From: Gnetum montanum | Taxonomy: Eukaryota; Plantae; Gnetophyta | Direction: 5' to 3' | NCBI GenBank assembly: GCA_015680685.1 | Contig: MNCI01000135.1 | Span: 1-64,000 of the forward strand | DNA: 64,000 bases | Part shown: positions 1-36,953 of the stretch, piece by piece | Position numbering within the stretch: the stretch's first letter is position 1 | Layout of the letters: each line of letters begins with the position of its first letter | Position numbers and translations under genes: made by a program | Notes under the pieces: model-generated | Databases searched by the model: none | Told to the model about the DNA's origin: nothing | Seen by the model: the letters and a program-made list of their open reading frames with translations, nothing else

Positions 1-13
1 GCAACATATACTT

Positions 14-2120: not shown

Positions 2121-2134
2121 AAAGGGGGCACAAA
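2121..2134 (+). promoter_or_regulatory. Polypurine tract
   Basis: AAAGGGGGCACAAA immediately before the LTR start TGTTGG at 2135. Confidence 0.75.
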
Positions 2135-3114
2135 TGTTGGCACATTTTGGCCATTTCATGGAATAGGCTGCATTTAAGCAAGGAAAAAATTTAAAATGGA
2201 ACCAGACATTTGAATTAAACACTAGCAAAATGTGACAGATCAAATGATGAGAATTTACGGTAGCAACAGTGCTAATAAGTTTTGTTATAAGAGTACAATG
2301 CTACTTGCAGGAATAATAATGTAAGGGAAATCATTGAAGGCTTTAAGTTAAAACATGAATAATGATCATCCTGCCATTATGCAATGCTTGATTCTTTAGC
2401 CTTGAGAAAGATTGGGAGAAATTCAGTGAACGCAAAGCACACATGGAGGTCTCGCAATGAATTGGCATTTACAGCTACATTCTGCAAGAAAACATTAATC
2501 GTGTCTCCATTCTCTCCAAAAATGCAAACAAGATCAATCATGGCCTGCAACTTGAGCAAACCTCTATGGTTGGAAATTATGATAGCAGTGCTATGTGCGG
2601 CCATATGCAAAAAATAGAAAACATATTGAAAATCATTCATGGATAAAGCGCAAGAATTTGGCCGCTAGAGACGGTAGATCTGTGATAGTCCACATCTCTG
2701 GTATGGCTATTTTCCATCATGTCATGAAAAACTGCAAAATCGCAAAGCAAGGAGCGTCTATAAAACTGCAATTGTGCCACCATTAAAAGGAACTTTCGAA
2801 CCCAACAACAAATAGATTCCAAATCTCACAAATTTATGAATGTCTCGAATACAGGGGACGTAGCCATGGCATTCACATGGTTAACAAACCATGTTATTTC
2901 TCCACCGGATTTGCCCTCATGTTCCCTTATCTGATCTCATTGCAATTTACTTTGTGAAAGAAAGAAAGAACATTGTGAAAACTCTTTCATGGCAGAAGGT
3001 TCATGTTGATGGTGGGTTTTTGTTAGAAAAGTGACAGGAATTCTGCACTTCATTTGCAAGAAAAAGTTTTTTTTTTTTTTTTGGTTTTCTCTATGCATCA
3101 TTTCTAAAGCAGCA

Positions 3115-3345
3115 ATGGCAAATGCTACGAGCTGTGCCCTAGTGATGAAAGCAACGTCAAATGGGATGTTTCAGAAGAATAATCCTCTGCATTTTGCATT
3201 TTTGCTGTTGGTGATCCAGATTTGCATCGTGATTGCCGTTACCAGGTCGAAGGCCTTCATTTTTCGGCCCATCCACCAGCCCTGCATCATCGCTGAAATC
3301 ATCGAGGGAGTACTTCTGGGGCCATCAGCCCTTGAACAAAGCAAG
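3115..3345 (+). pseudogene. CHX: Captured N-terminal fragment of a cation/H+ exchanger (CHX, CPA2 family)
   Basis: MKATSNGMFQKNNPLHFAFLLLVIQICIVIAVTR..FIFRPIHQPCIIAEIIEGVLLGPSAL matches the CHX N-terminus (MKATSNGxFQGxNPLDFALPL...QPRVIAEIxGGILLGPSALG). No further CHX sequence follows. Confidence 0.9.
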
Positions 3346-3356
3346 GTGTGCTCACT

Positions 3357-3575
3357 AAGCAACATTATCAAACACCTTATGTGCTTCCATGATGCTCTGG
3401 CATTTTCTATACATGTCCATCAAGGCTGCACCCATGTAAACATCCCTCCGAAGCCTAAGTTTATAGGCCTGAATGTGGATCTTCTTGCCTATCTATAAAG
3501 CCAAATCCATTACGAGACTCTGCAGGCTTTGAGAAAAAAAGGGAATGTGAAACTGTTTGCAGAAATGGGGCTGCT
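3357..3575 (-). pseudogene. Captured PLS-class PPR gene fragment
   Basis: Minus-strand translation ANSFTFPFFLKAC/(frameshift)SLVMDLAL*IGKKIHIQAYKLRLRRDVYMGAALMDMYRKCQSIMEAHKVFDN gives typical L and S PPR motifs. Confidence 0.88.
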
Positions 3576-3577
3576 TT

Positions 3578-3642
3578 AGGCTTGACGCCTTCACATTCGG
3601 GCGCTCTTAAAACGTGTGCAAGAATTAGAGATCAATCGCTCA
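3578..3642 (+). pseudogene. Short second PPR fragment (opposite orientation)
   Basis: RLDAFTFG/ALKTCARIRD resembles the PPR L-motif start xDxFTFxxxLKACA. Short, with one frameshift. Confidence 0.5.
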
Positions 3643-4185
3643 TTGCTAGTTGGTTATCAAGGAAGGAAGAATCGGTTACCAGGAAATGATGTAAAGGATG
3701 TGTTACTGATTGAAGAACCTCTGTAACAGTATCAAGTGACCACCACCATATTCGAATTTCTTTTTCCAATGAACATCACTTTTCCAAGGAAGCCAACAAC
3801 AAATTTTACGTGGATATGAAGCCAGCATCAAGTGCAAATGCATATGATTTAATTATACAAGCATCAGATGGTGTGCTTGATTTGCAAAGATCGGCTTTCT
3901 TGATTTTAAAGACCATGCAACTACCTCCACCAACATCTACACTAAGGTGGATGCTGAATTACTTTCTTAGTACCGCCTATTCATGAGAATTACTAGGGCT
4001 TTGTACATGGTGGGTAATGATATTTAATAATTAAAATCCTAAACAAAAATAAGATGACAATTGTATGAAGCGCTTATAGTATGGAGATCTTGGCTTTATT
4101 TCTTAAAATTATTACTTAGGTTGTGACTTATGAAAGAAATATTTGTAAAGTTTGTAGAGACACATGCCAATGTTAGCATGACTTT

Positions 4186-4270
4186 CTCCTAACTTCATGT
4201 ATAAGTTATAACTTCCTAACTTGTTGGGCAAGTAATATCTCCTAACTTGTTGGGCAAGTTATAACTTCCT
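4186..4270. repeat. Short tandem duplication (~27 bp) in LTR core
   Basis: CCTAACTTGTTGGGCAAGT occurs twice, plus a degenerate third unit. Confidence 0.7.
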
Positions 4271-7200
4271 TACATGGGAGAGAAGTTACCCAAGATATTT
4301 TGTAATAGCTAACTACCTATGAAATCCTATAAAAAGGTTTCAAGGATTAGAAGAAAGAAGGTCTCACTTTGGGTCTTGGTGGCTAAGGGGGAAGAGTATT
4401 GAAAAAGAAGACATTGTGAAAGATTGCTTGTAAGATGACTTATTAAAGATAACATTTTAGCCTCTTTGTCATAGTCCTGCGAGTTATGTTTATTTTTTAT
4501 TTTGTTTAAATTGTTTAGCTAGTGGTTTAGATAGTATCATGCTTGGCAAGTAATTTTGGGATTTTTATATTACTCTTTTTGTTCTTGTTGCATGATAGAA
4601 AATTTCTATTAAAATTTTGCTATAGAAGAGCTTGTGTTTGAAAGCTTTAAGAGCATTTTAGTAGTGAATTTTATTATTGTGTAATTGATAAGAACTGCTA
4701 TTGAGATTGTTGTAAGAGAGCCTCTACATGTAGTCAAGCCGTTGAACGATTCAATAATCAAGAGGGCTCAACAAATCTTTGGTATTTTGATAGGATCAGA
4801 ATAGCTTCTTTTATCTTTAAAGTGAATCTTCGTGGTATCTCAATCATAAATTGTCAAGTCTTTTGAAGGTTCGGTTGAATGCAATTGTTCACATCCATTA
4901 TCTAGCCAAAATTGAGTCTGGTATGTGATAGTTTACGCAGCAATTTTTTGGGTAACATATTAGGATTGTCTTGAAGAAATTTCTTATTTGAACCTTGAAA
5001 GTTTGATCAATTCGTAGTTATTGAATTTTGGATAGCTTTATTGCGAAGTGTTTACTCATATCATTTTACCTTGTTTAAACATTTGAGATCTTTACAGAAA
5101 TATGCTTTCTTGTTCTTTTCTTTTTGTTTCCATTGAATCTCGGTCTATTTCTAGTTTTCTTGTAGAACTATTTCCTTCTCTGGGGAAAATTAGAAGTAGA
5201 TTCGTAGAGTTGTGCTCAAATGTTTTTGCAAAACATTATTTGTTACAAGTAGGTATTATAAGGACCGCATAGACTAGACAATTGAATAGAATAAGAACTC
5301 TCAACAACTCACAGTACTTTGCAAAGTTGGCTGAATCTCTTTAAGATAAGTCATTTATAGTTTTAGACACAACCCAATCATTTCATTTTTCATAACAGTA
5401 CACCACAATAGCACACACACATACTCACATTAACTACTGAGTCTATTTAGAGGTATCTAGGCCTTGGTGTTGCCAGAGACTAGCAAGCACCTAAATCTTG
5501 TTCGAGGACACTCGTTGGCAGTCGTGTCCCAAACGATTGTCAACAACAACATGTGGAACTAGGTGAGGTAGTGTATAAAGTAATAACTCAATTTTCATAG
5601 CATGTAAAGGTTTTGTATGCAACATGTGGACACTTGGGAAGGATTTGTTTTCCTTAAAACCCAACATATAAGCTAATCTCCTCCCTAATTTCCCATATGT
5701 AGCATGTAAGGGCTAGATTTGTGCTCATAAATCCAAACACAACATTTTCCAATAATTTTAGCTCTTACCCATCTCATGGGCCCAATGCATTGCAACAAAT
5801 CTAAGAATTTCTAGCCTCTTTCTGTAGCAATCAAGGTAGAACTCAAGAATTTTGGCCATCACAGTGAAAAAGGTTGGATTGACCAATTCAAACCTAGGAT
5901 TTAAAAAGGCAAAGGAGGCTATATGGATCATTTATAGGCTTCTAGATCCATTTGCAGGTGATGGATCTTTGTCCATGGCCACCATATACACATCTTCCAT
6001 CACTTTTCCTAGTTTTTGGTCAAATTGTGAAAATGTTTTCCCACCTCTAGGCTTGATTTGGTTGAAATTTTGCATTCCAACTATGTCATATCTAAGATTT
6101 AGGATTTTCGATCATGTTGGGAAATAAATTTTGGCATCTTTTGGTAAAGATTTAGGTTTTTCCGAGGTCATATGTGTAGCATTGATGCTTATTTTTGCTT
6201 ATTTTGGTTAAACTTTGAGGTATTTTCTAGCATATTTGTGATGAGATTTTGAGTTCTAATTACACAAGATTGTTGTTGAAGGTCTTTCAACCATCCCAAA
6301 GATGAAATTGGATTTTTTTTAAAAAAAATTCTAGGTTTTTTTTTTTGCAATTACTTAATTGCATATTAGCGTTTTTTGGCTAGTTTTTGGTGAAAATCTA
6401 GGTTTTTTGATGAAAACTTTATGATATTTGGGATTTTCCTGCACCTATGAGCATAGCATTAATGGTGAATTTAGGCTATTTTGGTTATGTTCTCTGCATC
6501 CATGGTTTAAAATAATTTTTTAAAAATTTTCTCAAGTTTTTCCCTACCTTGGTATCTACGTTGGACAATTTTTTAGTTTTGGTTGTAGAGTTTTTGGGTT
6601 TTTTTTCTTGGCCTATGTTGACAACATTTGGGTATGTGGGACTTGAATTGTGTAATTTGGGTTTTTCACAGTCCCATGGCCAATGTGTTGGCTGTAGGAG
6701 CCAAGAAATCTTATGTTTTTTTCTTACAAAATTTCTTCCTACATTCCCAATGTTTGGCCATATCTAGAGTATTTGCCCATTATTTTATGGAAAATCCCCA
6801 TTCTCCAAGCTACAATATTGTCAATCTTGGCATTTCGTTCCTATGAAGACATATTTTTTGTTTTTAGCATTGTCAATTTCGATGTTATTTTATGTTGTAG
6901 TTTTGGCTTTAATATTAACATGTTTTGATGTTTGTCTTTCTTCACAAGTATTTAGCGATCCTAGTGATGGTTTCAACAACATTTTAGTTTCTTTTCCCAT
7001 GGTTTAGTCTAGGCCATTAGTGATGATCATGTGTTATCATCTTTGTTGTGTTATGGCTACTAGCTTGTTGCTATATTTGTAGCTAAAGAGATTGTGTATC
7101 ATTGCTTTGTACTTCCTTGTGTAATCATGGTTATAGTCATGGGCTACCTGGCCATGTTGAACATTCATGATGTTGTATTTAGATTGGTTTAACACTGCTT

Positions 7201-7479
7201 CTTGGTCATATATTTTTAATTATTTTTAATTGTTTTTCATATTTAATGTTTTTCTATTCTTTTTATATTTTATATAAGAATGTATTCAGGCCACATGTTA
7301 CAACAACATAGCTATGAAGTAAACTTTTAACAATATGGTATAACAAAATGGAAAATGAAAAATTTAAAACAAGGCCCATCTATTAAAGTAAAAACTATAA
7401 CCATTTCCATGTAGTAAACACGTCATGACGTATGAACAAGGAAAGGTAGAGAAGGTTACATATTTATCAATTTTAGGAC

Positions 7480-7580
7480 CTAGTTGGCCACAAATTTTAG
7501 GCCCTAGTAGGCCATGACTTCACCAATTTTATGTCCTGGTAGGCCATTAGTTTTAGGCCTTGGCAAGCCATGGTTTGCCA
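7480..7580. repeat. Degenerate 22-35 bp tandem repeats
   Basis: About four TTTTAGG(A/C)CCTAGT(A/T)GGCCA-like units. Confidence 0.6.
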
Positions 7581-7589
7581 GTTTTTTCT

Positions 7590-10090
7590 AGAAAGTGTGA
7601 GATAGTCTCAAAAGAGCATACAAGAATAAAATAAACAATGAAATACAATATAAGGCTACAAAAATAAATAAATAATCATTTATGAAAGATGGGAGAAGAT
7701 GCCTATTGTGGATTTTTTGCTTTATCTTTGATAGATCAAAGGGCTTCTTGTGCACAATTCCATGTTCACCATTCTTATTTGATATGGCAAGAAATGTGTA
7801 TTGTTTTTGGTCATTTAGTGTTGTATAGTTGGAGATGTTAGCCTTGGTGTTGTTGTTATTATTGTTAACCCCAGCTTGAGTGTGGGGAGTTTCATCTTGA
7901 AACTTCACGTCTAATCTTTGTTCAATGTTAACATTGTTAACTAATGGTAAACACATGTCATCCCCATGAATCACAATTTCACCATCCTCATATGGTAAAT
8001 AAATCTCCTAGTGTATAAGAGATGAGACCACTTGAAGCCAACCATGATCTTCCTAGGATCAAGTTTAAACTGGGTGTTTCCTCAACCACTAGGAAATTAG
8101 TGGACGTGGGAAACTATACCCCAACTACAAAGTCTAATGAGATGGAGCCTTGAAGCACTACCTACGACCCATTGAATGACTTGAGCATGAAGTTAGGATT
8201 TCTTGAATTTTTTTAGTTAAGCCTAGTTTCTCAACAACAGTGAATGATATCATGTTAATCATCACCCCATCATCCACATGAACATGATGAACCTTATACT
8301 TGTCAACACGTATGATAATGAGGAGAGGAGCATATTTCACTTCTCCATTCCATGGGTCAACCTTCACTTCACTTTCATGAAAGATGAGTTTGGTTGATAT
8401 TTGTTTTCCCCAAGTAAAGTTGCTCAATGATAGAATGAATGGATTCTTTGGTAGTTGGCATGTTTGCTCATAGGAATAGAGGTCAAAATTTGAGCTAGTA
8501 TGTCTCTATGAGCAAGAGAAGTCATAACTAAGTTTTATAGGTCCAATGATATGCTATTTTGATTCAGGGATGATTTAGCTTGGTCCAATGATGTAAAGAA
8601 ATTCTTTTCCTTGATGTGTGATTTTTTACCATTGCAATGGAGATTTCTTGTTAAGTTTTTAGTTATTGGTCATAATGAATAATCATTGGTTATAGGTTAT
8701 GATAGGTTTTCTTGTTGAAGGCGAAGGGACCCAAATAAAAAATGGTTCCCTTGCCTTAGAGGGATTAATAGCACATTATTTGGATTATGATGTTGATGCC
8801 AGAGAAGGTGGAACATGTATGACAAAAGGCTCATTAGGGACCAAAGATGGTAATACCCTTATGACCAATGGTGTTCTACAATTTAGATTCTAGGACTGAG
8901 TGCTAGCTAGTGGTACCTTGATGACATACATTTCTCCAAGAGAACTAGATCGAGTAAATGTTATGAACAAGGCTATGATGTAGGAGCTATTGTTAGTATT
9001 TGAAGAGCTTGATTCATTCAACACCAACTCTCTATAATTGATCATCTTCTAAAGATCATCTTTCAAGGCTAGGAAAAAATTAGTATCATGACCAGCTAGT
9101 TGATGATAGTAGCAAAACTTATCAAGCCTGAAGTACTTTGGTAGTGTTGGATCATATTTAGTTTCTACCCTTGGATATCTAACTATCTCACAAAGATGAT
9201 CATGCCTCTTATGAGTTTCCTCAAATAGCTACTTATGGTGAATACAATTGTCTTTAAGCAACTATTCTAGAAGCTCAAAGGGCTTCATAGGCAACTTAGC
9301 ATACCTAGTCCTATCCTTACACTCAAAATTTGGTCTTAGTTGGTTGGAAGCATTAGAAGTAGATGGTTGCAATAGATTAGAAGATGTTTTGCATGGTAGA
9401 GACTTTCACCTTTTTGTTTGTTTCATATCCTTGGATACCATGGCCATGGTTGTATGCACTTGTTTGATCTTATCCTTGTCCCTCCTTAAGTGCTAGCTTT
9501 TATAGGTCACATAGGCTAGATCATTACTAGCTTCAATAGCCTCCTCAATGTTCTTAATTTGTGAAAATTCTTGGCTCAGTAACCTAGATTCTAAGTAGTA
9601 GAGCATCAACATGATGAAGTCATTGACTACTTCCTTGAAGACAGCCAAGAGATGGATCTTAGACATGGGCTTGCAAATTTTGTTGAGTGTTGCATTCCAT
9701 CTTTAAAAAAACCTTTGAATTGGTTCAAGTGGCCCCTACCTCACTTTTACAAGTTGATATAAGATCATATTAAGCTTCAAGTTTTATTTGAAGCAGTTGA
9801 CAAATTAGTGTATTAAGTCTTCAAGAGAGAATATAGAACCTCTAGGTAGGGCTTGATACTAGTTTAAATCCTTTCCTTTTAGAGAAATATAGAAAATCCA
9901 TAGTATCATGTGAGGCCACACTTGCAATAGAATATGCTCAAAATAGAACATGACAAGATGTGCATTAGGATCTCCTTCACCATTTTATTTGGTGAAGTTT
10001 GGGATAGGCATGCCTGTGGATAATGTGATTTGAGGAACAATAAGGCTAATGGGATCATCTTAGTGAAATTCCATAATCTTTACCATTTGA
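7590..10090 (-). mobile_element. Degenerate Ty3/Gypsy gag + aspartic protease, no RT visible
   Basis: Minus strand: PIPNFTK.NGEGDPNAHL (gag start, ~9950-10060); FCYYHQLAGHDT..LKDD (CxxHxxxGH-type knuckle, ~9050-9130); PLLIIIRVDKYKVHHVHVDDGVMINMI (protease, ORF 8158-8427). Confidence 0.8.
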
Positions 10091-11099
10091 GTGGTACTGG
10101 TTTTGAGTTTTCATAACTTTTCAATAAGATCTTGGATCAATTGAAAGCCTTGATCTAGGTCCTATGGAGCTCTTAAGGGCTACACTTATGATTGTTAAAT
10201 GGCTAGTGGTTGTGAAATGAGCAACGATATAGACTAGAGAGGTTATGTGACTATTGTTGTATGAGGATTAAATTGGGAAAATGATGTTTGTATAGGAACA
10301 TGAGCAATGGAAGAGGCATTAGACACAAAGGAATTACATGAAACATGTGGAATTCATGCTTCAAAAGAAGGATCAGCTAAAACTACAAAAGGTTAAGGCA
10401 TGAAGGAAATTACTAGTGGAGGTTGAGACAATATAATAAAAGCTGTTGAGGTGAACAATGAAGTAAACAAGAAAGTGAGTTGGGAACTTGGGTTTGTAGA
10501 GGTAACAAAGGGAGTTTAGTTTACTATTGAAGTGAAAGGCATAGAGTTGAACATAGTCACCTCTAGGATAGATAGTTGTAAAAGTTTCCCTAAGAATGTA
10601 TCTAGTTCATAATTAGCTCCGAACTTGTCCTGGTCCTCTTAATGAGATCCTAAACTTACCTTTTCACTTACTTTATCATCCTCATCTACACTTACTAAGT
10701 ATGCCAATAGGTGTATGTAGAATTTAGATAACTTAATATGGTTGTATGGTGAAGGGATGTATTCCTTCCCATCCTTATGGATCAACTCATATTAACATTT
10801 GAAGTTAAACTCCTTGCATGAGATGCATACTCTCACTTGGATTTTTATGCATATGAAGTTGTAGTATTGTTCATCAATGTTTACATGCACTAGGCTAAGT
10901 CCTAAACACTTAAGAAATTGCCTACACTTTACTACAGCTACATGCTTAGGCTCATATATGCAAGTGGATTCCTTGTTTGAGACCATGGCTACTATGTGGT
11001 GTAGTAAAATAGTTAAAACAAAAGTCATAAAATTTGAAAGACTAATTAATTGTTCAAGTGTAATAAAGGCTTTAAATTTTTTTGGCATTTTAAACAAGC

Positions 11100-11320
11100 T
11101 ATAAGCTTGCAACATACAAGGCTCACAGTGTAAGGAGCTATAGTGTGTAAAGCCTATAGCATGTAAGACTTCACAGCATGTGAAACTATAGCATATAAGA
11201 CTCACAATGTGTGAGGCTTGCAATGTGTGAGACTTTACAACATGTAAAACTCACAGCATGTGAAGCTCATACCATGTGAGACTACAACATGTGAAGATTC
11301 ATAGTGTAAGAAACTACAAC
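11100..11320. repeat. ~16-bp minisatellite (CACAGCATGTGAAACT-like, roughly 12-13 units)
   Basis: Repeated units seen directly: cacagcatgtgaaact, cacaatgtgtgaggct, cacagcatgtgaagct, cataccatgtgagact. Confidence 0.8.
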
Positions 11321-13002: not shown

Positions 13003-13115
13003 ATTGTTTACTTTTTCTTACTTTATGTTTCAAATGTTGATGCTTCTGCATACTTTAGTTGTTTACTTTTTCTTACTTTATGTTTCAAATGTTTACGCTT
13101 TTGCTTACTTTATGT
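13003..13115. repeat. ~55-bp tandem duplication
   Basis: TTGTTTACTTTTTCTTACTTTATGTTTCAAATGTT..GCTT.TGC.TACTTTA occurs twice. Confidence 0.75.
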
Positions 13116-16510: not shown

Positions 16511-17369
16511 TGATGAAGATTTAATATGTTGATTGTGTTCATGTTTGCTCATTGACACATCCTAGGATGCATAGGACAATATGTGTCAATGCTAATCCTC
16601 TTGAAGCCTATATAAGTACACACACCAGCCCCATTTATGGTACCTTTGGTCAGTCTAGTAGCTAAACTCTTGCAATTTTCTTTTGTAGGACTTAGAAAAA
16701 TTTCCCTCTAAGTACCTACAATGTGAATTGAATTAATTGTACAAAATTTTATTTTAGTACAATATGTACTTTGACACAATTGCATGAATATAAATAAAAT
16801 CAAGATTTTTCCTCTCCATTACAACACTTGGATTAGCTTAAGTTTATTTTTAAGCATTTTACTTTACATGAAATTTACTTTCTTGTACTTAAGGGTTTAA
16901 TATTTTATTTCATAAGTAATGTAAGTATGACCACTTTGAGCATAATATATTAAGACTTGATAATCCCAATAATAAATACTCTGTATGCCCAGTAGTGAAT
17001 ACTTGGTATCCTAGTAGTGTTGGTATATGTTCAGGATGTGTATGGAAAGTTAGAATGGATACTTCATGTTTAGGAAATTTTAGTTATTAATTAGTAGATT
17101 TATATATTTCAACCACTTATTTCCTTAATACATTTCAAGATAAAAATAATAAAAATTATAAATACAAACATTTTACACCTCATTAACACTTAGTCATACA
17201 AACAAATTTAACACAAGTGATGACTAGAAAAACAACAACTAGTAACATCACAATTTACTAAATAGGACATAGGATGCTTAGATAGAAGGCATCCATGAAA
17301 TCAAAATATATCATTCATACATTCTTGTGATTCATATGGCTGGATATATAGAATACTTGCTACTCATCA
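16511..17369 (+). repeat. 5' LTR of Athila-like element
   Basis: TGATG...CTCATCA, homologous to 39931-40804. Followed by TGTCATCATTGTTTGTGAC, a decayed version of the tRNA-Asp PBS TGGCGCCGTTGCCGGGGA. Confidence 0.85.
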
Positions 17370-22615: not shown

Positions 22616-25482
22616 TATTGTCACATTGAACCATTTGATGGAGCAAGCTTTATAAAATAATGCCAAGACCTTATCAAGGTGAAAGTCAAATTGTCCAATC
22701 TAACTTTTTATTGGTAATAGTGGAAAGTATGATTATAATATCAATGATTGTTGAATGAAAATGAATGATATAATAATATTAAACAATAATCTAAATGGCA
22801 TCATTTCCATGAAGATTTTTTGCCCAACACAACTGCAGAAATTATGTTTTTGTAATAATTAATTACATTGGGAAATTCTAGAAGGATGATTCACCTTGAA
22901 AATTGGAAAATTTGCCAAAGCTTATTTCATAGTACATTGCAGCAAATCATATTAGTGACTACATTCTAGGGCAATTTAGCAATTTGAAGCACATGTATTT
23001 ACTAACCTTGTATTCAATGGCAACAAAAAAAATCAATCATGAATTATCCATTGCAATTGTGAAATTTTTCACAACAACAAAGGGTTGAAAATTGGAAAAA
23101 TCAAATTCATGAAAATAGAGTAGAGATTTTACTTTGGGTACCAATCATCCATGGATTTGCATAAGCAAAGCCAAAAAGGAGAAGCATAGGCACATCTGAA
23201 CTGAGAACTTTACAGTAGTTGTATGAAGCTTTCAAGATGTAGACAAGAAGTAGCCATAACTAGGGCCTCAAATCTTGCAACGACTTATTCCCATCTAGTA
23301 GGATCCTAGTTTCTAACTGACCTATAAAACCCTTAGTTTCAACTGAATCTACCTCAACATTGGGTCCATGGTGGGCTTAAGTAGCTTATTCATGTCTCCA
23401 CCTACATATTTGATGGGTGCCATTAGCAATGGATTTTGAGTTTTCAAGGATGAGTTGCCATTTCCACCTCAATTCATGAAGATTTTAGCAACAAATAAGG
23501 TAGCAACTACACAGCATTGTAGGGAACAACACAAAAATGACAAACCCTCATCTCTCACTAGTCAACCCAAGATACAGTAATTGATGAAAATGTTTGCACT
23601 AACAAATGCTATAATCAACATTAGATAGAAGGGCACCAGCTGTTCCTACACATTACTTTGCCCTTCGATCATGGCACCTAATATGATGGAAGAAACATCG
23701 ATGAAAATTGGCAGTAAGACCTTGTAGAGGCTACAACAAGATTGGAACATGTAACCCTATAACCACACCTCATCCACAACTCACCATGGTAATTACTGAC
23801 CCCAAAGCCTTTGCCTTTGCATTAACAATGCCATCATAACTCTTCCTCAATCAAAATGGCACCCATGGTGACAAAGAGGTGCAATGTGGTGCATGATGAA
23901 CCCTCATTCCTACAACATGTGATAAACAATAAAGCCTTCCTCCTGCATTTTCACAACAAACTAGAGATAATCACATTTCATCTTAATATTTAACTTTTAT
24001 CAAATGATGCTTTGGTTGGAGCATAATAAAAAAAAAGAGAAAAAAAAAGAAGAAAAAAAATACATATTATTATTATTGTAGGCAAGAGATTACAACATAA
24101 GTTTTAAAGATAGTCTATATATATATATATATAATAGAGAAAAGGTTATCTTTAAAGGGGAGAAAGGAGATTATTAAGAAGGATACTTACCAACTTTGGC
24201 TTAAATTTCTCATAACTTGCTATAGAAGTTACAATTTCTCATGATGGTTAGGATTTAATACCCTAAGATATTTGTAGCTTCCCTTAACCTTTTATGATGG
24301 TTGTAACTACCCCAAAGCTACTATAAAAAGGACTAGTGGGAGAAATTCAAATAGGGAAAAAAATTTGAGAAGAATTGTTGAAGATTTCTTGTAAAGAATG
24401 GCTTGCTAAATGCATCAATTTAGCTACTTTATTTTAATCCTATGAGTTCTTTTCTTCCAATTTTATTTCAATTGCGTAGTTAATACTTTTGATAGTATTG
24501 TGTTTGGCAAGTAATTTTGGTATTTGTGTTATCTCTTATAGCCCTGTTATTGTGCAATATTAAGAATTCTATTAGGGTTACCATAAAAGAGCTTATGTTG
24601 TCATAAGGCATCTTGAGAAATTTAATAGTAACAACTTTGTGAAATTGCCTATTTGAGTTTAGAGAATCTATAAAATCTTTGATACTTTGAGATGACTAAA
24701 ATAGCTTCATTTGTTTAAAGTTTATTGCCTTGGTATTTCAATCTTGAAATTGTTGAATTTTTCATGAAACCTTTATTTTTGCAATTCTTGACAACTATTA
24801 ACTAGCCAAAATATATGATTTTATTTTGTCATTTACAAAGCATTTTTTGGTAACTTAATAAGATTGTCTTTTATGAAATTTCTTGTTAAGCTCAAATGGT
24901 TGGACAATTCATAGCATTAGATTGAATTGGGATAGCTTTATTGCAAAGTATTTCCTGATGTCAATTTATCTCACTTAAATGTTTGAGATTTTACACAAAT
25001 TAGCTTTTCTTTCCTTACTCTTTCTATGTCCATTGAATCTCACTCTATTTCTAGTTTTCTTCTGGAACTCTCTCTAGGAAAAATTAGGAGTATATTTTGG
25101 CAGAATTGTGGTTAAGCATTTTTGTGAAATTTTATTTGTTTCAAGAAACATACTATAGGGACTATATAGACCAAGTAACTTGACAAATTGGGAATCTTTA
25201 ATGAGTCATAGTGTTTCACAAGGTTAGCTGAATTTCTATTATAATAGCCAATTACAGTTTCATACACAACCCAATCATTTCAACATTCACAACAATAAAC
25301 ACATATTCATTTTTAGTTCGTTTCATTACCACTGAGTCTATTTGGATGTATCTAGGCCATGGTGTTACCAAAGACTAGTAAGCACCTAAACCTTGTTTGA
25401 AGAAACACCTACATTTCCCATGACTCGAGTCACGAGACTAAAGGCACAATGTTGGTGGTCTGGTCCCAAACAGTCACCAACA
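22616..25482 (+). mobile_element. Solo LTR (cargo-LTR copy 2, 2867 bp)
   Basis: Starts TATTGTCACATT (TG>TA) and ends CCAACA. Perfect TSD AAAAG (22611-22615, 25483-25487). The interrupted integrase resumes as TIKILMVGYFWLTIF. Confidence 0.92.
22778..23016 (+). pseudogene. Captured plant extracellular-LRR (RLK/RLP) fragment(s)
   Basis: NNNLNGIISMKIFCPTQLQKLCFCNN*LHWEI and, with small frameshifts, EIGKLPKLIS*YIAANHISDYILGQFSNLKHMYLLTLYS fit LxxLxLxxNxLSGxIPxxxxx. Confidence 0.7.
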
Positions 25483-25487
25483 AAAAG

Positions 25488-26540
25488 ATGACCATAAAAA
25501 TCCTGATGGTAGGATATTTTTGGCTAACAATCTTTATGGATGCTCACCATTTTGCTTATTCATGTGAGAGATTCCAAAAATATAGAGGAATGACAACTAG
25601 AATGAAAGGACCCCAATAGTGGATTCAACCACTAGATTCTTTCAATCCTTGAAGAATTGATTTCATGGCATACATCACTTCCATGTCCAATGGGAAGTCA
25701 TACATCATTGTTGTTGTTGACTACTGTACCGAAAGGGCTAAATTTGTAGAAGTTTTTTACTATATCTCTACTATTGCAACTCGATTCTTTTAACAATAGG
25801 TGATAAACAAGTTTGATGTGCCTACAACACTAATTTCTGGTAATGAAACATATTTCACAGGTGCTACCTTTCAAAAGTTAATGCAATGCTTAACGATGCA
25901 ACATAAACTCACGACACCTTACCATACTCAAGCTAATGATCAAGCAAAACTAAAAAATACAAATCTTATTAGAATTCTAACATGAACTATTAGTAGATAT
26001 AGAAAAGATTCAAGTACCAAACTCATTGATGCCCTTTGGGCATATCACTCGACATGGAAATTTCCTATTAGCTACTCTCCTTATGAATTAGTGTATGAGA
26101 AGTTACCCAAACTTCTAATTCAAACTAAACTCTGTACACTCATAACTACATGTGAGTTTAACTTGAACATTAACTTAGCACAAAAGGAACAACTCATGAC
26201 ACTCAATGTGCTAGATGAAAATTGAAAACTAACCCTAATAATAAACGAAGTGCATAAGACATACAATAAACAATGTCACAATGCATGAATAAGGAGAGTT
26301 ACTTTTAAACCAGGAGAGAAGGTTCTCTATTGGAATTCCATGCATGTGTCGCAACAAACTAAGTTCTAGATATTATGAGAAAGACCATCCATAATACACT
26401 TAACTTTTCCTTCTAGGGCTCTAATAATCTACCATTCAACAAGCCCTCAAAAGCACATGCTAGTCAACATCCAACAACTTAAATCCTTCGTGGACTTCCA
26501 AGAAACTAGTTGCAACACTAACATCTCAAATCAATAACAA
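25488..26540 (+). mobile_element. Athila-like integrase core and C-terminus
   Basis: GYFW, IDFM, YIIVVVDYCT, KFDVPTTLISGNETYF, TPYHTQANDQAK, DALWAYHST, SPYELVY. Confidence 0.88.
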
Positions 26541-26711
26541 ACTCACTCCATTTTCTAAATCTCCTCTTTCCAACTTAGTACCATGATATCTTCAAGAGGG
26601 TAAAAGGATTTTTCTTCTCTTTTGTTTTGTAATGTTCTTTCTATATTTTTCATTTTCTTTATATTTTATTGATTATTCTATATTGTAGGCACATTTCATC
26701 CATACCATGGA

Positions 26712-27100
26712 GCAGCTACCACTGTTATTAGAACCATCTATATTACTGTCAACACTAGAAGAACAATTGTTTGCACCACTCATCAATCTAGCATTGAAAT
26801 TTTTGAATCCTTTGATGAGATGTTGCTCATCACGAGAGGAGGTCAAGTCATCTACTTTGGACATCTTGGTGACCACTCATGCAAGATAATTGAATATTTT
26901 GATGCTATTCCTAGATGTTGGAAGCCACCTCTGTGGTTGTAGAGCAACTGTTGGAAATAGATTTTGTAGAACATTAAAAAAAATCATCCCTCTTCAAGCG
27001 TAACATAGATATGGTGAAAAAGCTCACTATTCCACCACCGGGATCAAAGCATCTGCACCTTGAAAATCAATATTCACAAACCTTAATGGAGCAATTCAAG
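26712..27100 (+). pseudogene. Captured fragment of a full-size ABCG/PDR transporter (NBD2 and linker)
   Basis: [67 protein letters not shown] / [61 protein letters not shown] matches the PDR consensus ([28 protein letters not shown]...PPPGxKDLYF.TQYSQ). It reads in a different frame from the listed ORF 26707-26889. Confidence 0.93.
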
Positions 27101-27879
27101 AATGACGCATTGTTAAACATGGAAATTTTTTAGGTGCATTAAGGTTTTAATTGGTCAGAACTGTTACCTTGGAGCCTCACATGACAAAGGCTGATAAGAA
27201 ATAAAAATGAATGCCCAGAGCTCTAGAAACCTCACCGGATGATTAACAATGTATTGTTACGAACCTACAAAATCAAGAGTAAGATCAGAATCAAACACAA
27301 AGATAGAGACAGGAACACCCAAAAAGTGGTATTGGCAACCGTTGCTGAAGGCCTTCGTTTTAACTCTCATCGCCACCGCCATTGCTCAGGCCCCTACCCG
27401 TGTCAACAAGATAAGGATAGTCGCATAAGCAGCAGTAAGTGGTGGCAACCAATTGCAAGAGGCCGCAGCCGCTGACAAAGAATGCTTACATTATGGGCAA
27501 AGTTACGATGTAACACGAGACATGCATGGACATGGAGCCATCTTAGAATTGTTTTCCTGTCTCTTGATCTTCGTGGAATTCGCGTTATGCTGAAGCTCTG
27601 AATGCATTATTGTGCATTTTAAAGGATTCATGATAAGGCGTGAGAATGTCAAAAGTTGTGCATGAAAAGGAATCGACCCGCTAGTGGCCATTAAGATCCG
27701 CATCCTAAGCTGTGCAATGATTGAACATCATCATATCCATGGCCACTACTTGGCTCTGTGATTCCTGGATTCGCAAGGCGTCGCCATAGGAAGTCATGGA
27801 AAGCATAATGCTTCATCTTCTTCTTTTTCCTACATGCTTGACTTCCGTCAAGAGCAAATGCAGCAAATAAATCATAGAC

Positions 27880-27967
27880 CATGGCCAACATTGGATGCCT
27901 ATTAAGCCCATTCCTGGACCTCTAGTTGTCAACATTGATGATTCCCTTCAGATGATAACCAATGGAA
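27880..27967 (+). pseudogene. Captured 2-oxoglutarate/Fe(II) dioxygenase fragment, part 1
   Basis: HGQHWMPIKPIPGPLVVNIDDSLQMITNG matches GxWxxVxPxPGALVVNIGDxLQxxSNG. Confidence 0.88.
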
Positions 27968-30900
27968 TGTTATTCCCAATTGTTTGCACCAATATTATAT
28001 TAAATGTAAAAGAAATTGCAAAAAATAAAAAAGATACATAGTTACCTGAGAAAACCTTTAAGTGAAAAACCCTACCAAAGAATCAGCTCTTGGACTGTTA
28101 GCAACACAAATTCGAAAAATTGAAGCTTAAGGATAATTTACAAAGGAAGGGAGATGATTCTCAAGCTTATGCTTTGAAAAATGTGATTTGGATGCTCCCT
28201 TTGAGCTCCTTACATACTGTCAGGAAACCAAAAATTAAAAAAGGAATAAGGTAGTTTATTTTGGTTGGGATAGGTATGAGCCCAATTATAACATAAACAG
28301 AAATAAAAATATAATAAGGCAAGGTAGAAATATCTGAGAAAATCAAGGCACATTTGCCTTCATCCACCTCACAATTCTTCTTCTTGAAGGTAATGCTACT
28401 TTGAAGAACGGTCCAAACCATCTTTAGAAAATCCAATTATAAGAAGAGCAAATGTTGATTAGCATCGAAGAAACTTTTTAGCATGAGTTGACTTGGTGAG
28501 TATATCTATAGGATTTGCTTCAATTAAAATTTTATTCAAAAAAATCCTTTGCTTTTTAATTTCCTTACGTATATAGTGATATTGTATTTCAATATTAATC
28601 AAAGTTTGAGTGATGCCAAGTTCAATTATTAGCCTTTGGAACCATATAGCTTCTTTGCATGCTAACTTAGTAGCAACATATTCAACTTTAGTGATAGACT
28701 GAGCAACACAAGATTATTTCTAACTTTTCCAAGAAATAGCACCACCAAAAAGATTAAACACATATCCACTAGTAGATTTCCTACAATCAATATCACCACT
28801 CCAATCTACATCAACGAAGCCAAGAAGTCTATTGAAATCATTTTTATACCAAATCCCATAATTGGAAGTACCACGAAAATATCGGAAGACTCGTTACATG
28901 AAAATCTAGTGTTGTTTTCCTGCATTAGACATATACTTGCTAAGTTTTTCAACAATGTAAGCAATATCAAGTCTAGTAGAGACCACTACATACATTAAAC
29001 TACCAATAGCACTAGCATATGAAATTTTAACCATGAGCTCTTTTTCTTCACTTGTCTTTGGGAATTGTTCAACTAATAGTTTAATACCAGTTTCACAGGG
29101 TGTAGTCACAAGCTTGTAATCATGCATACTAAATCTTCTTACAATATTTTCAACATATGTAGATTGTCCAAGCCAAAGATTGTTATTAGCCTTGTCCCTT
29201 TTGATTTCCATGCCCAAAATTTTTTGTATAGCACCAAGATCCTTCATCTCAAATTAAGAAGACAGATGAAGTTTTAACTTCTAAATATCATGTATGTTAT
29301 TACCTGCTATTAACATGTCATTGACATATAGCAGCAAAATAACATATTTGTCACTTGTATTTTTAACATACATACAAGAGTCTTTGACACTTCTAACAAA
29401 GCCAAGATTTATCATGTGATCATTAAATTTCTTATTCCACATCCTTGGTGCTTGTTTGAGCCCATATAGTGATTTTAATAATCAACACACCATTTGCTCT
29501 TTTGCTTTAATTTCATATTGTTCAGGTTGAAGCATATATATTTCTTCCTCAAGATCACCATGGAAGAATGCTATTTTCACATCCATTTGTTCAAGTTCAA
29601 AATCATAAATAGCTATGATAACCAAAAATGATCTTATGGATGTTAATTTTACTACTAGAGAAAAGATTTTATCATAATCAATTCCCTTTCTCTAAGAAAA
29701 TCCTTTAGCTACAAGTTGTGCTTTGTATTGATTCCGAGATTTTATTTTGTACACCCATTTATTTCCAATGGGTTTTCTCTGTGATGGAAGCTCAATTAAT
29801 TTCCAGGTTTTATTTTGGTGAATTGATAACATTTCAACATCCATTATCTATTTTCACTTTGCATTTTTCATAGATAAACATGCCTCATCATATGTTGATG
29901 GCTCATTATTTTCAGTAAATAGGACATATTCTTCTAGATGTGAGGGTAATTTTCTTATACATGTTAAACATCTTAACAACTCATCTTCACTAAAAGTAGT
30001 TTCTCCCTCTTCATGTTGGTCCTTCTCGTTTACCATGCTATCACCATCTTGTTCGCTAAGGGCAGGATGACCCTCAAAAATTTCATTATTAATTTCAACA
30101 AGCGCATACATAGGAGTTACATCATTTGAAGGAGTTTCAGTATTAGAAGATTCCTCCTTCATAGATCCACATTTTTCTCTAAAGATAACATCTTGACTAT
30201 AAATAACTCTTTTGGTTTGTGGGTTATACAACTTATAAGCTTTGACACCATGTTTATAGCCAAGAAAAATACATTTGACAAACTTAGAGTCTAATTTGGA
30301 CCTATCATATTTTTGAACCTATACATAGGCTTCACAACCAAAAGTCTTCAAATAATTCAAATTAATAGATCTACAACACCGAACTTCTTCTGGAATTTTT
30401 TTGCCAAGTGCTAATGAAGGAGATATATTGATAAGATAACCTGCAGTTGTTACTACTTCACCCCAAAAATGCTTGTCAAGATCATATTCACTAAGCATAC
30501 ATCTAGCACATTTCATTAATGTTCCATTGAAGCACTCTACTACTTCATTTTCTTAGGAGTCCTTGGAATAGTCTTTGCCTTTGAATGTCATGTTCTTTAC
30601 AAAAAGCACTAAATTCATTTGAGCAAAACTCACCACCATTGTCAATTCTTAGAATTTTGATTTTCTTTCTTAAAGAATTCTCAAAAAGAACTTTGGATTC
30701 TATGAATTTTTGAAATACTTCAAACTTATGTTTTAACAAATAGATCCAACTATTTCTAGAATAATCATCAATAGAAGAAACATAATACATGCTACCTACA
30801 AGAGAACTTATTTTAATATCTTTAACTAGTTCACATACATCACTATGTATTAGTTCTAATATCTAAAGAGATTTAGCATTACTTCTTTGAAAAATGTAAC

Positions 30901-32348
30901 GCCTTTGTTTACCATGTAGACAATGATGACAAAAATCCAAGGAATCTTTCGAAAGCTTAAATTTACCTTGCTTGTAAAGTTTCTTAAGTCCTTTTTCATG
31001 AAGATGTCCTATTCTTTTATGCCACAAATCAATACTTAAATTTAAATCAATAACTACTAATGCACTTAATTTCTACTTTAATGTCTTAGCCTCTAATTTA
31101 TACAACTTGTTTATTTTAATCCTAGAAGCCAAAACAAATGAACCATGCAGTATTGCACATTTTCCAGTTCCAAACATAACAGTTAATCCTGCATCATCCA
31201 ATTCACTTACTCAAAAAAAATTTAGTAAGTGTTGGAACATTACATACACTGGGAATCGATTTAACTACTCCATTTTTAAACTAAATCTTTACCTTTCTAT
31301 AACCTATAACTTTGCATAAACCATCATTACCCAATCTAACCATTTCAAGATTAAATGATGTATACTCACTGAACTAATCAACATGTGGAGCGTAGTGATG
31401 AGATGCACCCAGTCCACATACCATGAATATGAATCAGCATTATCAGAAGATGAGACAACATACAAATCTCCTTCTTGAGTAGGAGGGGCTTGATCACTTT
31501 TTGACACATTACTCTCTTTCCCCTTTTTTGGAGGGGTTTTATAGTCTTTCTTTATATGACTAACTTTACCCCAATTCCAACATGTAGGTGGCTTCTTTAC
31601 AAATTTTTGAGCCTTATTCTTAAATTAAAGCCTCTTAACAAACTTTGGCTTTACATTATTTTTGATAAATAATACATCATTTTAAGGATTAGAACTTTTT
31701 CTTCTTNNNNNNNNNNNNNNNNNNNNNNNNNNNNNNNNNNNNNNNNNNNNNNNNNNNNNNNNNNNNNNNNNNNNNNNNNNNNNNNNNNNNNNNNNNNNNN
31801 NNNNNNNNNNNNNNNNNNNNNNNNNNNNNNNNNNNNNNNNNNNNNNNNNNNNNNNNNNNNNNNNNNNNNNNNNNNNNNNNNNNNNNNNNNNNNNNNNNNN
31901 NNNNNNNNNNNNNNNNNNNNNNNNNNNNNNNNNNNNNNNNNNNNNNNNNNNNTCGCTTGCACCAATATTATATTAAATTTAAAAGAAATTTTAGAAAATA
32001 AAAAAGACACATAGCTACCCTAGGAAAAACCTTCAAGGTGAAAAACCTAGCAAAGAATTTGCTCTTGGACTATTAGTAGCATAGCTTCAGAATATTGAAG
32101 CTCAAGGAAAATTTACAAAGGAAGGGAGATGATTCTCAAGCTTATGCTTTGAAAAATGTGGTTTGGATGCTCCCTTTGAGCTCCTTATATATTATCACAA
32201 AACCAAAAATTAAAAGAAGGGATAAGGTAGTTTATTTTGGTGGGGATAGGTACAAGACCAATTATAACATAGAAACAAATAAAAATAGAATAGGGTAGGG
32301 TAGAAATATTAGAGAAATAAAGGTATATATTCCTTCATCCACCTCACA
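27968..32348 (-). mobile_element. Ty1/Copia element nested in cargo-LTR copy 3
   Basis: LTRs 27968-28373 and ~31953-32348 (left end hidden by the gap); TSD TGGAA/TTGAA. Minus-strand zinc knuckle, WYVD protease, LWHKRIGH, IDDYSR/RIDNGGEF integrase, QMDVKIAFFHG, LYVNDML, MKDLG RT, DVDWSGD RNase H start. Confidence 0.93.
31707..31952. other. Assembly gap (N run)
   Basis: 246 N. It covers the Copia PBS/gag start. Confidence 0.99.
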
Positions 32349-32353
32349 TTGAA

Positions 32354-32418
32354 GGTACAGAAGCATTAAGCATCATGCTGTAATGAACAAGGATACTTAT
32401 AGGCTCTTCATTACAACA
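32354..32418 (+). pseudogene. Captured 2OG dioxygenase fragment, part 2
   Basis: Removing the Copia and one TSD copy gives in-frame ...ITNG-RYRSIKHHAVMNKDTYRLFITT, matching NGRYKSxEHRAVVNxxxxRLSIAxF. Confidence 0.88.
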
Positions 32419-35400
32419 TCATCATCCTCATCTTCATCTATCATAGAGGAGAAGGACAGAGTGAAGTAAAAATGGGCAAATCACAATGGGGCAAAAATGA
32501 GAGCAAAGGTGAGCAAGTTTGAGCAAAATGGTTACATCGACATCATGCAATGGATGCCACATGTGGCCATGCTGGACCGTCTCATGGCAACCTTCTCCTA
32601 TAACCTCGACACCTGCAATAATGTCGTAATTATTCATCAAGATGAACTCTTCTATGTATGGACACTGCAACAACACCACCACCACAACTACAATAATTAT
32701 AAGTTGATAGCACCCATGACCATGGACTATAACCTAAACACATGCTTGGGATGCCATTGGAAATGAGGGAGCTACTTTCAAACATAGTGTCACCATTACC
32801 ATCTGCAAATCCATCATGACGACACCATTTCTATACTAGTTACATGCCACTACATTGATGATGGAGATAGAAATTAGGTTGTAAATAAGTGGTTGCTACT
32901 CTGCTAAGGCACACAACATCAATGAGGCATGTTAAAATCACAACACATTGTAGTTGTTAGTTGGTAGTTTGGATGGCCATGTTATCATCTGTAGTTACCA
33001 TTTTCACCAACACTCGTGATTTTTAAATGTTATTATGGTTTTATATTTCATGCATTCATACCAAGGTTTTGATATTAAATTATTATAAGATGACAAAAAA
33101 TAACCATATAATAAAACAATGATGAAAGAAGAATAAAATAAAATAATTGAATTTGGTAAATGAAGTTCAAATTGAAGGGAACATTTTTCTAGTCTATATG
33201 TAATCAACCATAGTTTGGCTATCTTGCATTTATATTCAAGTGACCTAGAATTAAAGAAGGCACCTAGAGTTAGAGCCATCTCTACTTAAAAAGCTTGTTT
33301 CACCATCTTGATCATGTTGAGCATAAACTATATCTTCCCCATAGGAAGATTTATCATAAGGGTTAATGTGCCAAAATTGGTGATCTCATATTAAGGATAA
33401 TGACTCAAGAATATTATGAAAAATAAAATAAAATATTTATAAGTTAGTTATTAAACAAGACACTTGCCAACTATGGCTTAAATTTCTCATAACTTCTTAT
33501 GGAAGTTATAACTTCTTAGGGTGGTAATGAATTAATCCCCTAGATATTTGTAACATCCCTTACCTTCTCATGATGATTGTAACTATCCTAAGGCCTCTAT
33601 AAAAAAAGGCTTCAAAGGTAGAATTTGAAGGAATGGATTATGGGTAGAAGATACTTGCAAGAATATTGAAGATTATAAAAGCATGGATTGCTATTGTAAA
33701 AGCATGGAATGCTAAAGACATCAATTCAGCTGCTTTGTTTTAATCTTGTAAGTTCTTTTCTTCCCATTTTGTCTTAGTTACTTAGCTAATGGTCTAGATA
33801 ATATTGTGTGTGGCATTTAATTTTGGAATTTTTTAGATTATTATTATAGCTATGTTTTTGTGCAATATTATATTTTCATTAGGTTTGCCATATAAGAGCT
33901 TATGTTTTCTTAGAAAAGCAACTTGACCAATTTAATAGTAATGTCTTATTGAAATTTCCTATTTGAGACAAGAGGATCTAGAAAATCTTTGATACTTTGA
34001 CTTGCTTGAAATAGCTTCATTTTTTAAAAGTTTATTGCCTTGAATTTTAATCTTGAAATTGTCAAATTTTTCTGCTAATTCTATTGTTTGCAATTCTTGA
34101 ACACTATTAACTAGCTAAACAAAAGCTTGTACTTGCTATTTACAAAGCAATTGGAAAATATAATAAGATTATCTTTTACAAAATTGCTTATTAGGCTCAG
34201 AAGGGTCTAGACAATTCATAATATTTAGATTGATATTATGAAGTGTTTCATCATGTTCAATTTATCTTGCCTAAATTTTTAAGATTCACACAAATTTGCC
34301 TTCTTTTCTTTTCTCTTTCTAAATCCTTTGAATCTAGCTCTACTTCTAGTTTTCTTGTGGAATTTTGTCTCTAGGGGAAATTAGGAGTAGATTGGTAGAA
34401 TTATGCTCAAGTATTTTTGTGAAATTTTATGTGTTTTAAGTAGCGTACTATAAGGACTATATAGACTAAGTAATTTGATAAAATAGGAATCTTTAATAAC
34501 TCATAGTATTTGACAAAGCTAGCTGAATTTCTTTTACAATAGCCAATTACATTTTCATACACAAAGCCAAGCATTTCAACATTTACAACAAAAACTACAC
34601 ATTCATGCTTAGTTTGCTCTATAACCACTGAGTTTATTTGGAGGTATCTAAGCATTGGTGTTGCCAGAAGAATAGCAAGCACCTAAACCTTGTTTGAAGG
34701 AACACCTTTGTTTCCCATGACCCCAAGTCACAAGACTAGAGGCCTATGTTGGTGGTCCCAAACAATTGCCAACATTTATATTTTTCCTTTTCTACTTTTT
34801 ACTTTAATCATTATTTTTATGTTCATTTATTCTAAATTGAAATCTCTAATGTTGTTCCATGGCTACTACAAATTTTGGAAATTGTTGAAAGTAGCTATCA
34901 AGATTATGATTTATTACAAAGGACAACTTTTTCTGTAGAATATGTTCTCTACTAACAATTTATCAATGCTTTGGTGGTATCAAGCACTAAGTTCACGACA
35001 TCCACCCATTCCATCTATCTCATGTGAAGTTCTGCATCATGGGAGAATGAAGGTTCTTTCACATCAAAACTAAAAGTATCATGTGATCTTATTACCTAAA
35101 AACCTAGGAAAGGACCAAGTGAAAATGAAAAAGGATATGACCTCAAGAGGATTTATTGTGTTCTTTTCTCAACTTTTTTCTTAAGTTCTATGGCTCCTCA
35201 TGGATATATCATCACTCCTACTTTTGACCATAAAACAAAGTATGCCTCTATATGATGTGGTTCTCAATAAAAAAGGGGGAATTATAAGCACACACCTTTG
35301 AAGATCTCTTGGAATACAAGCATTGGTTATGGAGCTAGATAAACATGTTAGCCATTCCTAAAAGCATCCTTCTAACTAAGGTCCAAATTTCTTCCTAACT

Positions 35401-36461: not shown

Positions 36462-36951
36462 ATAATCAACCTTCATTAAAGCATGAATAAAATAATAATA
36501 CAATAATATCATGCCCCTATAATCACTAAATAAGAACGTAACAATAAATTCCAACTTGTGACTAATAAAATTAACCCCATCAAAACAAAAAATGTATCTA
36601 ACTAAAAAAAGACTATATCTAAATGACTAATCCTAAGTTATTTTTGTGATCACATATGGCACCTAAGTGAGGACCATAGGAAAAGGGGCCATCATAGCCT
36701 AGGAAGATAATCAACCTTCATTAAAGCATGAATAAAATAATAATACAATAATATCATGCCCCTATAATCACTAAATAAGAACGTAACAATAAATTCCAAC
36801 TTGTGACTAATAAAATTAACCCCATCAAAACAAAAAATGTATCTAACTAAAAAAAGACTATATCTAAATGACTAATCCTAAGTTATTTTTGTGATCACAT
36901 ATGGCACCTAAGTGAGGACCATAGGAAAAGGGGCCATCATAGCCTAGGAAG
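36462..36951. repeat. 245-bp tandem duplication, apparently perfect
   Basis: 36462-36706 appears identical to 36707-36951 by inspection. Confidence 0.95.
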
Positions 36952-36953
36952 AA

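Follow-up and report, generated by a model that had tools for sequence, protein, structure and literature searches.

The stretch of DNA analysed here (the window) is 64 kb of the Gnetum montanum genome (contig MNCI01000135.1), AT-rich (GC 0.33) and made up mostly of decayed repeats. It contains three related long terminal repeats (LTRs), all on the plus strand, in which a short common 5′ end and a long conserved 3′ core enclose a variable zone, or slot, that holds pieces of host genes. These three copies are the whole sample compared (n=3), and all positions are window coordinates. Copy 1 (2135-5545, 3411 nucleotides, nt) is a 3′ LTR, with its 5′ end at 2135-2167, variable zone at 2168-4157 and core at 4158-5545. 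Copy 2 (22616-25482, 2867 nt) is a solo LTR, with the corresponding parts at 22616-22648, 22649-24170 and 24171-25482. Copy 3 (26684-34774) is also a solo LTR; its 5′ end lies at 26684-26716, its variable zone extends to 33447 and its core occupies 33448-34774. The total of 8091 nt for copy 3 includes a 4.4 kb nested Copia element, and removal of this element leaves ~3.7 kb.

The left edge of the window falls within a decayed Ty3/gypsy element, of which the 3′ part of the internal region is present (2-1006, plus strand). An integrase zinc finger was identified at 2-151, and the integrase core and SH3-like part at 194-1006 (Pfam Integrase_H2C2, E 2.8e-5; rve, E 2.7e-6; SH3_Tf2-1, E 1.2e-3). No chromodomain was detected in the 2-1006 region upstream of copy 1. 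A polypurine tract (2121-2134, plus strand), which reads AAAGGGGG at 2121-2128, lies immediately 5′ of the copy 1 LTR. Copy 1 thus has both the polypurine tract before the 3′ LTR and the integrase at the 3′ end of pol that mark Ty3/gypsy elements. The reverse transcriptase and RNase H of this element lie beyond the left window edge, so we infer its gene order.

The LTRs begin and end with TGTTGGC...GTCAACA (copy 1), TATTGTC...CCAACA (copy 2) and TGTAGGC...GCCAACA (copy 3). These are TG...CA termini with short terminal inverted repeats, with one change in copy 2, which opens with TA. Copy 2 is flanked by a perfect 5-bp target site duplication (TSD), AAAAG/AAAAG, and copy 3 by TATAT/TTTAT, in which 4 of the 5 positions match. 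Within the window, the three LTR starts are the only sites of the 5′ pattern CACATT-N3-4-CCAT-N3-ATGGA, and the three LTR ends the only sites of the 3′ pattern GTCCCAAAC..CAACA, with none expected from shuffles of the sequence; the patterns were built from the copies themselves, so these counts are evidence only that the window holds no fourth copy. On the basis of the termini, TSDs, polypurine tract and integrase context, we conclude that the copies are true LTRs and that copy 1 is the 3′ LTR of an integrase-bearing Ty3/gypsy element. The LTR positions and TSDs given in a preliminary description, made from the sequence alone, were recovered. That description also assigned the three LTRs to one family; they are real and related, but with core identities of 70-77% a single family is not established. 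We also considered copies 2 and 3 as the LTR pair of one element. This was rejected, as each has its own TSD and neither a primer binding site nor a polypurine tract occurs between them.

The 5′ end common to the three copies is ~33 nt long, and the common 3′ core spans 1.3-1.4 kb at 70-77% identity (K 0.28-0.37). Positions 4773-5511 of copy 1 are 71% identical to 24673-25406 of copy 2 and 70% identical to 33983-34697 of copy 3, and the cores of copies 2 and 3 (24171-25482 and 33448-34774) share 77% identity. With sensitive settings, core similarity begins at 4158, 24171 and 33448, which are equivalent core positions. The variable zones have lengths of 1990 nt (copy 1), 1522 nt (copy 2) and ~2345 nt (copy 3, Copia removed), and sensitive alignment among the three revealed chance-level matches only. 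In the comparison of copies 2 and 3, identity rises from 40-58%, which is noise, to 76-82% right at the core edge. Homologous DNA at the divergence of the cores would still align, and the slot has therefore been replaced, not just diverged. In other words, wholesale replacement has made the slot content differ from copy to copy. These alignments agree with the preliminary description, which reported a common 5′ end of ~30 bp, a core of 1.3-1.4 kb with a TATA box and a middle of 1.5-2.4 kb without similarity between copies (1.5-2.3 kb as measured here).

A TATA-like motif, CTATAAAAA, forms an invariant block in the core alignment (plus strand, 4327-4335, 24321-24329 and 33597-33605 in copies 1, 2 and 3, respectively) and is positioned 150-170 nt into the core in all three. 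Because the variable zone lies upstream of this conserved motif, it is most likely U3. A fixed slot in U3 had been proposed previously; its borders are indeed the same in all three copies and lie upstream of the TATA motif, and the assignment to U3 derives from the position of that motif alone. Just 5′ of the motif are short tandem repeats with a unit of ~26 nt (TCCTAACTT...AAGTTATAAC), at 4185-4276 and 33489-33526, with one additional unit in copy 1. These may have an enhancer-like role in the LTR promoter. In copy 1 and the initial part of copy 3, the slot has a GC content of 0.38-0.41, above the 0.31-0.33 of the cores, which would fit the presence of further exon- or UTR-derived (untranslated region) sequence.

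Cargo was identified using Pfam, PDB and representative protein library searches together with tblastn collinearity, and matches to Atlas clusters were taken as leads only. In copy 3, a piece of a PDR-type ABCG transporter (26712-27094, plus strand) starts where the conserved LTR end stops. It matches CDR1 in PDB (E 1.5e-11) and full-length PDRs in the representative library (E 6e-22), to which it has 52-57% amino-acid identity. A tblastn search aligned it collinearly, with one frameshift, to residues 817-957 of a 1433-amino-acid (aa) PDR. The same slot holds a 2OG-Fe(II) dioxygenase piece in two parts. Part 1 (27871-27967, plus strand) was identified by Pfam (2OG-FeII_Oxy, E 1.3e-4) and by a match to an O-demethylase in PDB (E 3.5e-5). 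Part 2 (32353-32418, plus strand) has its best PDB match to residues 279-298 of a plant 2-ODD, with an E value of 0.42 when taken alone, and it aligns to the same chain directly after the end of part 1. Deletion of the nested Copia element and one copy of its TSD restores the dioxygenase reading frame, with ...ITNG joined to RYRSIKHH...

The cargo of copy 1 includes the N-terminus of a CHX/CPA2-like cation/H+ exchanger, 78 codons from the ATG (3112-3345, plus strand), which matches the NapA Na+/H+ antiporter in PDB (E 4.7e-6). Its nearest Atlas cluster is the streptophyte Na_H_Exchanger (score 0.86, a lead only). Next to it is an antisense piece of a PLS-type PPR protein (3358-3492, minus strand; PDB synthetic PPR-DYW, E 1.6e-26, and PLS9-PPR, E 2.2e-19). 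The two pieces, in opposite orientations, are butt-joined, with a gap of at most 12 nt. A second, plus-strand PPR piece at ~3499-3650 was not confirmed by search. This cargo also contains a run of 17 T at 3068-3084, 30 nt 5′ of the CHX start codon. The T run may belong to the donor 5′ UTR or, alternatively, represent the tail of a polyadenylated fragment in antisense orientation.

In copy 2, a candidate LRR-like piece extends over three frames at 22755-23085 (plus strand). LRR proteins were the sole matches, at E values of 0.085 and 3.7 that are not significant, and Pfam detected nothing in this stretch. Pfam and PDB searches of the remaining open frames of the variable zones also returned nothing. 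The CHX, ABCG/PDR and 2OG dioxygenase assignments of the preliminary description are thus supported by searches, its PPR assignment stands for the minus-strand piece but not for the plus-strand one, and its LRR assignment lacks statistical support. Its report of unrelated gene pieces in both orientations was correct: four or more unrelated nuclear genes have contributed pieces to the slots (CHX, PDR and 2OG dioxygenase in plus and PPR in minus orientation). No cargo has a second copy within the window. The identified gene pieces comprise only ~20-30% of the variable zones.

We used the PDR piece to distinguish capture of RNA from capture of DNA. Many of the 150 PDR matches in the library are partial open reading frames (ORFs) called on genomic contigs, and the points at which their homology breaks indicate intron sites. 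In 49 matches homology is lost within a few residues after ...EYFE (residue 880 of P0006), and in 34 of these 49 a V follows, the residue that read-through of a phase-0 GT intron would give. Homology starts at residue 810-812 in 25 matches. The two sets of breaks therefore delimit a widely conserved exon of 70 codons. The PDR piece in the LTR runs uninterrupted over the intron site (EYFD-AIP) and its 383 nt cover 141 codons without any gap of intron size. Because a conserved intron site is crossed without an intron, we conclude that the PDR piece is copied from spliced mRNA, where the conserved site is that indicated by partial proteins of other organisms. At the junction between LTR and PDR sequence, the stretch GGAGCAGC (~26709-26716) is compatible both with the consensus of the LTR end and with the Ala-Ala codons expected there. 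The same exon (GLDARAAAIVMRTV...DELLLL) is present ~3 times in tandem in a 156-aa library protein (P0003), which suggests a tandemly duplicated PDR exon, or a repeat-borne PDR fragment, in another genome.

Capture of host mRNA pieces by LTR elements via template switching, including the formation of multi-gene chimeras, is published (PMC5131818, PMC2774510, bioRxiv 10.1101/777037, PMC13317346). In the model of Tan et al. (2016), reverse transcriptase switches between the element RNA and co-packaged mRNA, and integrase needs only 15-20 bp at each end (PMC5131818). Maize Bs1 and the mouse “super” retrocopy are known multi-gene chimeras (PMC5131818). The Gnetum LTRs resemble the products of such LTR-mediated retroposition, in which partial, intron-less pieces of host mRNA reside in an LTR retrotransposon and one chimera may have several parental genes (PMC5131818). 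Absence of donor introns was found for the PDR piece only. The position of the cargo is different. A retrocopy formed by LTR-mediated retroposition takes the place of part of the internal coding region, which leaves the product non-autonomous, whereas here the internal ORFs are not replaced: the cargo is in the LTR, upstream of the TATA motif, and gag-pol is untouched. Moreover, U3 cargo of the Gnetum type would occur twice per element. The capture mechanism may be the same as that of LTR-mediated retroposition, with a different architecture.

Host gene fragments in plant LTR elements have been surveyed several times. A survey of maize identified 425 capturing elements, none with more than one gene (PMC2774510). 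Among Sireviruses, 3% of elements carry fragments, 15% of those carry at least two, and there is no orientation bias (bioRxiv 10.1101/777037). Host gene fragments also occur within LTR elements of rice and sorghum (PMC3726574). These elements share with the Gnetum LTRs the presence of host exon fragments, in some elements two or more of them. However, capture is rare in the surveys and no fixed LTR position is described, whereas cargo occupies one slot in all three Gnetum LTRs and at least two of them hold pieces of at least two genes. In BARE-2, derived from BARE-1/Wis-2, and in Veju, aberrant template switching introduced foreign sequence into the LTR (PMC13317346). This is similar in that sequence acquired by template switching in the LTR region is inherited by a sub-family. 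It differs in that the donor is another retrotransposon or DNA of unknown source, not spliced host mRNA, and the result is not a multi-gene mosaic. In the literature that we searched, with incomplete coverage, a fixed U3 slot with spliced host fragments in a coding-competent element was not found described. The preliminary description stated that no case of this architecture was known. This is too broad with regard to mRNA capture by LTR elements and multi-gene chimeras, which are published, but agrees with our search with regard to the U3 slot.

Constant ends around a variable middle in which fragments from several host genes lie in both orientations are also characteristic of Pack-MULEs, Pack-CACTA elements and Helitrons. 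These elements capture DNA and keep introns, and they have terminal inverted repeats (TIRs) with 9-bp or 3-bp TSDs, or Helitron ends. In contrast, the Gnetum LTRs have a 5-bp TSD, TG..CA ends, a polypurine tract and integrase, and a spliced fragment, and the slot has no TIRs: no inverted repeats of 16 nt or longer bound any of the variable zones. We therefore rejected a nested Pack-type element as the source of the slot, as no TIRs bound it and the PDR piece is spliced. A Helitron was rejected because the PDR piece is spliced and so lacks the introns that Helitrons keep, although no dedicated search for Helitron ends was made.

More generally, the cargo might have been acquired after integration of the LTRs, either during double-strand break repair with filler of cDNA or ectopic origin, or when a DNA transposon of the Pack-type TIR or Helitron kind inserted into the LTR and brought gene sequence with it. 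Break repair is able to capture reverse-transcribed spliced mRNA (PMC4516963), the mixed orientations and butt-joined pieces fit filler DNA, and nested insertion did occur in copy 3, in the form of the Copia element. Still, we judge this explanation improbable. It needs three independent events in the same interval, each leaving ~33 nt on one side and stopping at the same core edge on the other, and the ancestral U3 in between would also have to vanish. The slot borders have neither terminal inverted repeats nor extra TSDs, and the spliced PDR piece speaks against Pack-MULEs and Helitrons, since their capture starts from genomic DNA.

The nested Ty1/copia element in copy 3 (27968-32348, minus strand) has Pfam matches to RVT_2, rve, gag_pre-integrs and SH3_retrovirus and is flanked by the TSD TGGAA/TTGAA. 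Its LTRs, at 27968-28373 and from an N gap to 32348, are 86% identical (Jukes-Cantor K 0.135), and this divergence provides a minimum age for copy 3. The N gap (31707-31952) lies inside the Copia element, with the gag side to the left and a Copia LTR in the same orientation to the right, which makes the scaffold join plausible. The sequence lost at the gap consists of the last ~16 nt of the Copia LTR, the primer binding site and most of gag, and if the Copia element was once complete, the real gap is probably longer than the 246 nt stated. We considered the gap as an influence on the finding and rejected this, as it is within the Copia element and away from the LTR-cargo junctions, and no relevant frame spans it. 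Downstream of copy 3 there is a perfect (100%) two-copy tandem duplication with a period of 245 (36462-36952). The second of its copies (36707-36952) is 246 nt long, like the N gap, and is located exactly 5000 nt downstream of it. The duplication looks like an assembly or scaffolding artefact, not biology.

The N gap and this artificial-looking duplication raise the question of whether mis-assembly fused LTR ends to unrelated genic sequence. We regard this as highly improbable. The gap is in the nested Copia element and not at any LTR-cargo junction, and the same architecture occurs at three separate loci with proper TSDs. In addition, the cargo has decayed as expected for old neutral DNA, as indicated by the identity of the PDR piece to full-length PDRs.

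The explanation that we favour, and consider reasonably probable, is that the three LTRs are old and come from related non-chromoviral Ty3/gypsy elements, with a free U3 zone that was rebuilt in each lineage with pieces of spliced host mRNA by template switching. The ~33-nt 5′ end, beside the polypurine tract, would be the presumed integrase recognition site. The core would comprise the TATA box, R and U5 and be conserved, leaving the zone between free to vary. This free zone would have been rebuilt independently in three lineages with partial copies of PDR/ABCG, 2OG dioxygenase, CHX and PPR mRNAs. During minus-strand synthesis over U3 at the 3′ end of the element RNA, reverse transcriptase may have jumped to a co-packaged host RNA and then back. 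Only recombinants with the polypurine tract, 5′ end and promoter would have kept mobility, and inserts would thus pile up in one slot by survivorship. As U3 of the 3′ LTR is the template for both daughter LTRs, an insert there would be doubled and inherited, with gag-pol unharmed.

Retroviral “double-copy” vectors provide an engineered parallel. In these vectors an insert in the 5′ part of the U3 of the 3′ LTR is copied to both LTRs and is tolerated in replication. They are based on animal retroviruses, whereas the Gnetum case would be a natural and repeated plant version.

Several points weigh against the template-switching explanation. It is built on three copies only, all of them old and decayed. 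A single splice junction, that of PDR, carries the intron test, and the intron site was deduced from partial proteins of other organisms, not from the PDR genes of this genome. A simple switch onto mRNA during minus-strand synthesis would not account for the antisense PPR piece, for which an antisense template or an event on the plus strand has to be assumed. The U3 assignment relies on a motif. No source could be assigned to approximately 70-80% of the slot. Finally, the 5′ LTR of copy 1 lies beyond the window, and we infer that cargo is inherited through transposition, in which case paired LTRs would have the same cargo and a mosaic would recur in several copies.

In the preliminary description it was proposed that the family loads new host fragments so often that almost every insertion has its own set, and that this cargo may be useful as camouflage from silencing, as a source of small interfering RNAs (siRNAs) against the donors or in enhancer shuffling. 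The cargo does differ in all three copies while occupying the same slot. If the 23-30% core divergence is mostly decay after insertion, the master elements could have been near-identical save for their cargo, and the nested Copia element alone has a K of 0.135. However, three copies yield no rate, and the core divergence equally allows long-separated sub-lineages, each with one ancient fixed mosaic. Capture by LTR elements is also rare in maize, both in Sireviruses (3% of elements; bioRxiv 10.1101/777037) and genome-wide (425 elements; PMC2774510). We think this reading unlikely.

Other searches added little to these results. There was no Rfam match in positions 1-36000, and a metagenome scan with a conserved core motif gave 0 matches. 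A homologue search of a protein collection returned none for the CHX ORF and none for the 2OG ORF, and the integrase had only two matches in the same collection, both with <50% identity. Given these sparse matches, this genome and its close relatives appear to be outside that collection. Elsewhere in the window are two pairs of old direct repeats, 16557-17367 / 40005-40802 (76%) and 45425-46496 / 49361-50460 (78%). The latter pair, separated by 3.9 kb, may represent the two LTRs of a decayed element of small size.

What is new here is the spliced PDR piece, which points to capture via RNA, and a fixed place for cargo inside the LTR, which is unusual among known captures. Known capture by LTR elements usually wrecks the coding region and yields dead-end, non-autonomous chimeras. 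A tolerated U3 slot would instead let an autonomous element carry host sequence, double it in each cycle and scatter it as solo LTRs beside a promoter. For genome annotation, such LTRs yield false gene-fragment and pseudogene calls. If the architecture is general in this genome, it would offer a natural system in which to measure the frequency of recombination with host mRNA by reverse transcriptase, a way to ask directly whether captured exons provoke conflict with their donors through siRNA and methylation (the model of bioRxiv 10.1101/777037), and a map of the LTR parts that are truly required. We tentatively suggest, as a possibility less well backed than the template-switching explanation itself, that this plant Ty3/gypsy lineage is a natural “double-copy vector” that kept its own genes and repeatedly took pieces of spliced host mRNA into one U3 slot. 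If true, its LTRs and solo LTRs would constitute a large and changing library of host exon fragments adjoining a promoter, and a “Pack-LTR” class would parallel Pack-MULEs at the RNA level, which would affect exon shuffling and siRNA cross-talk.

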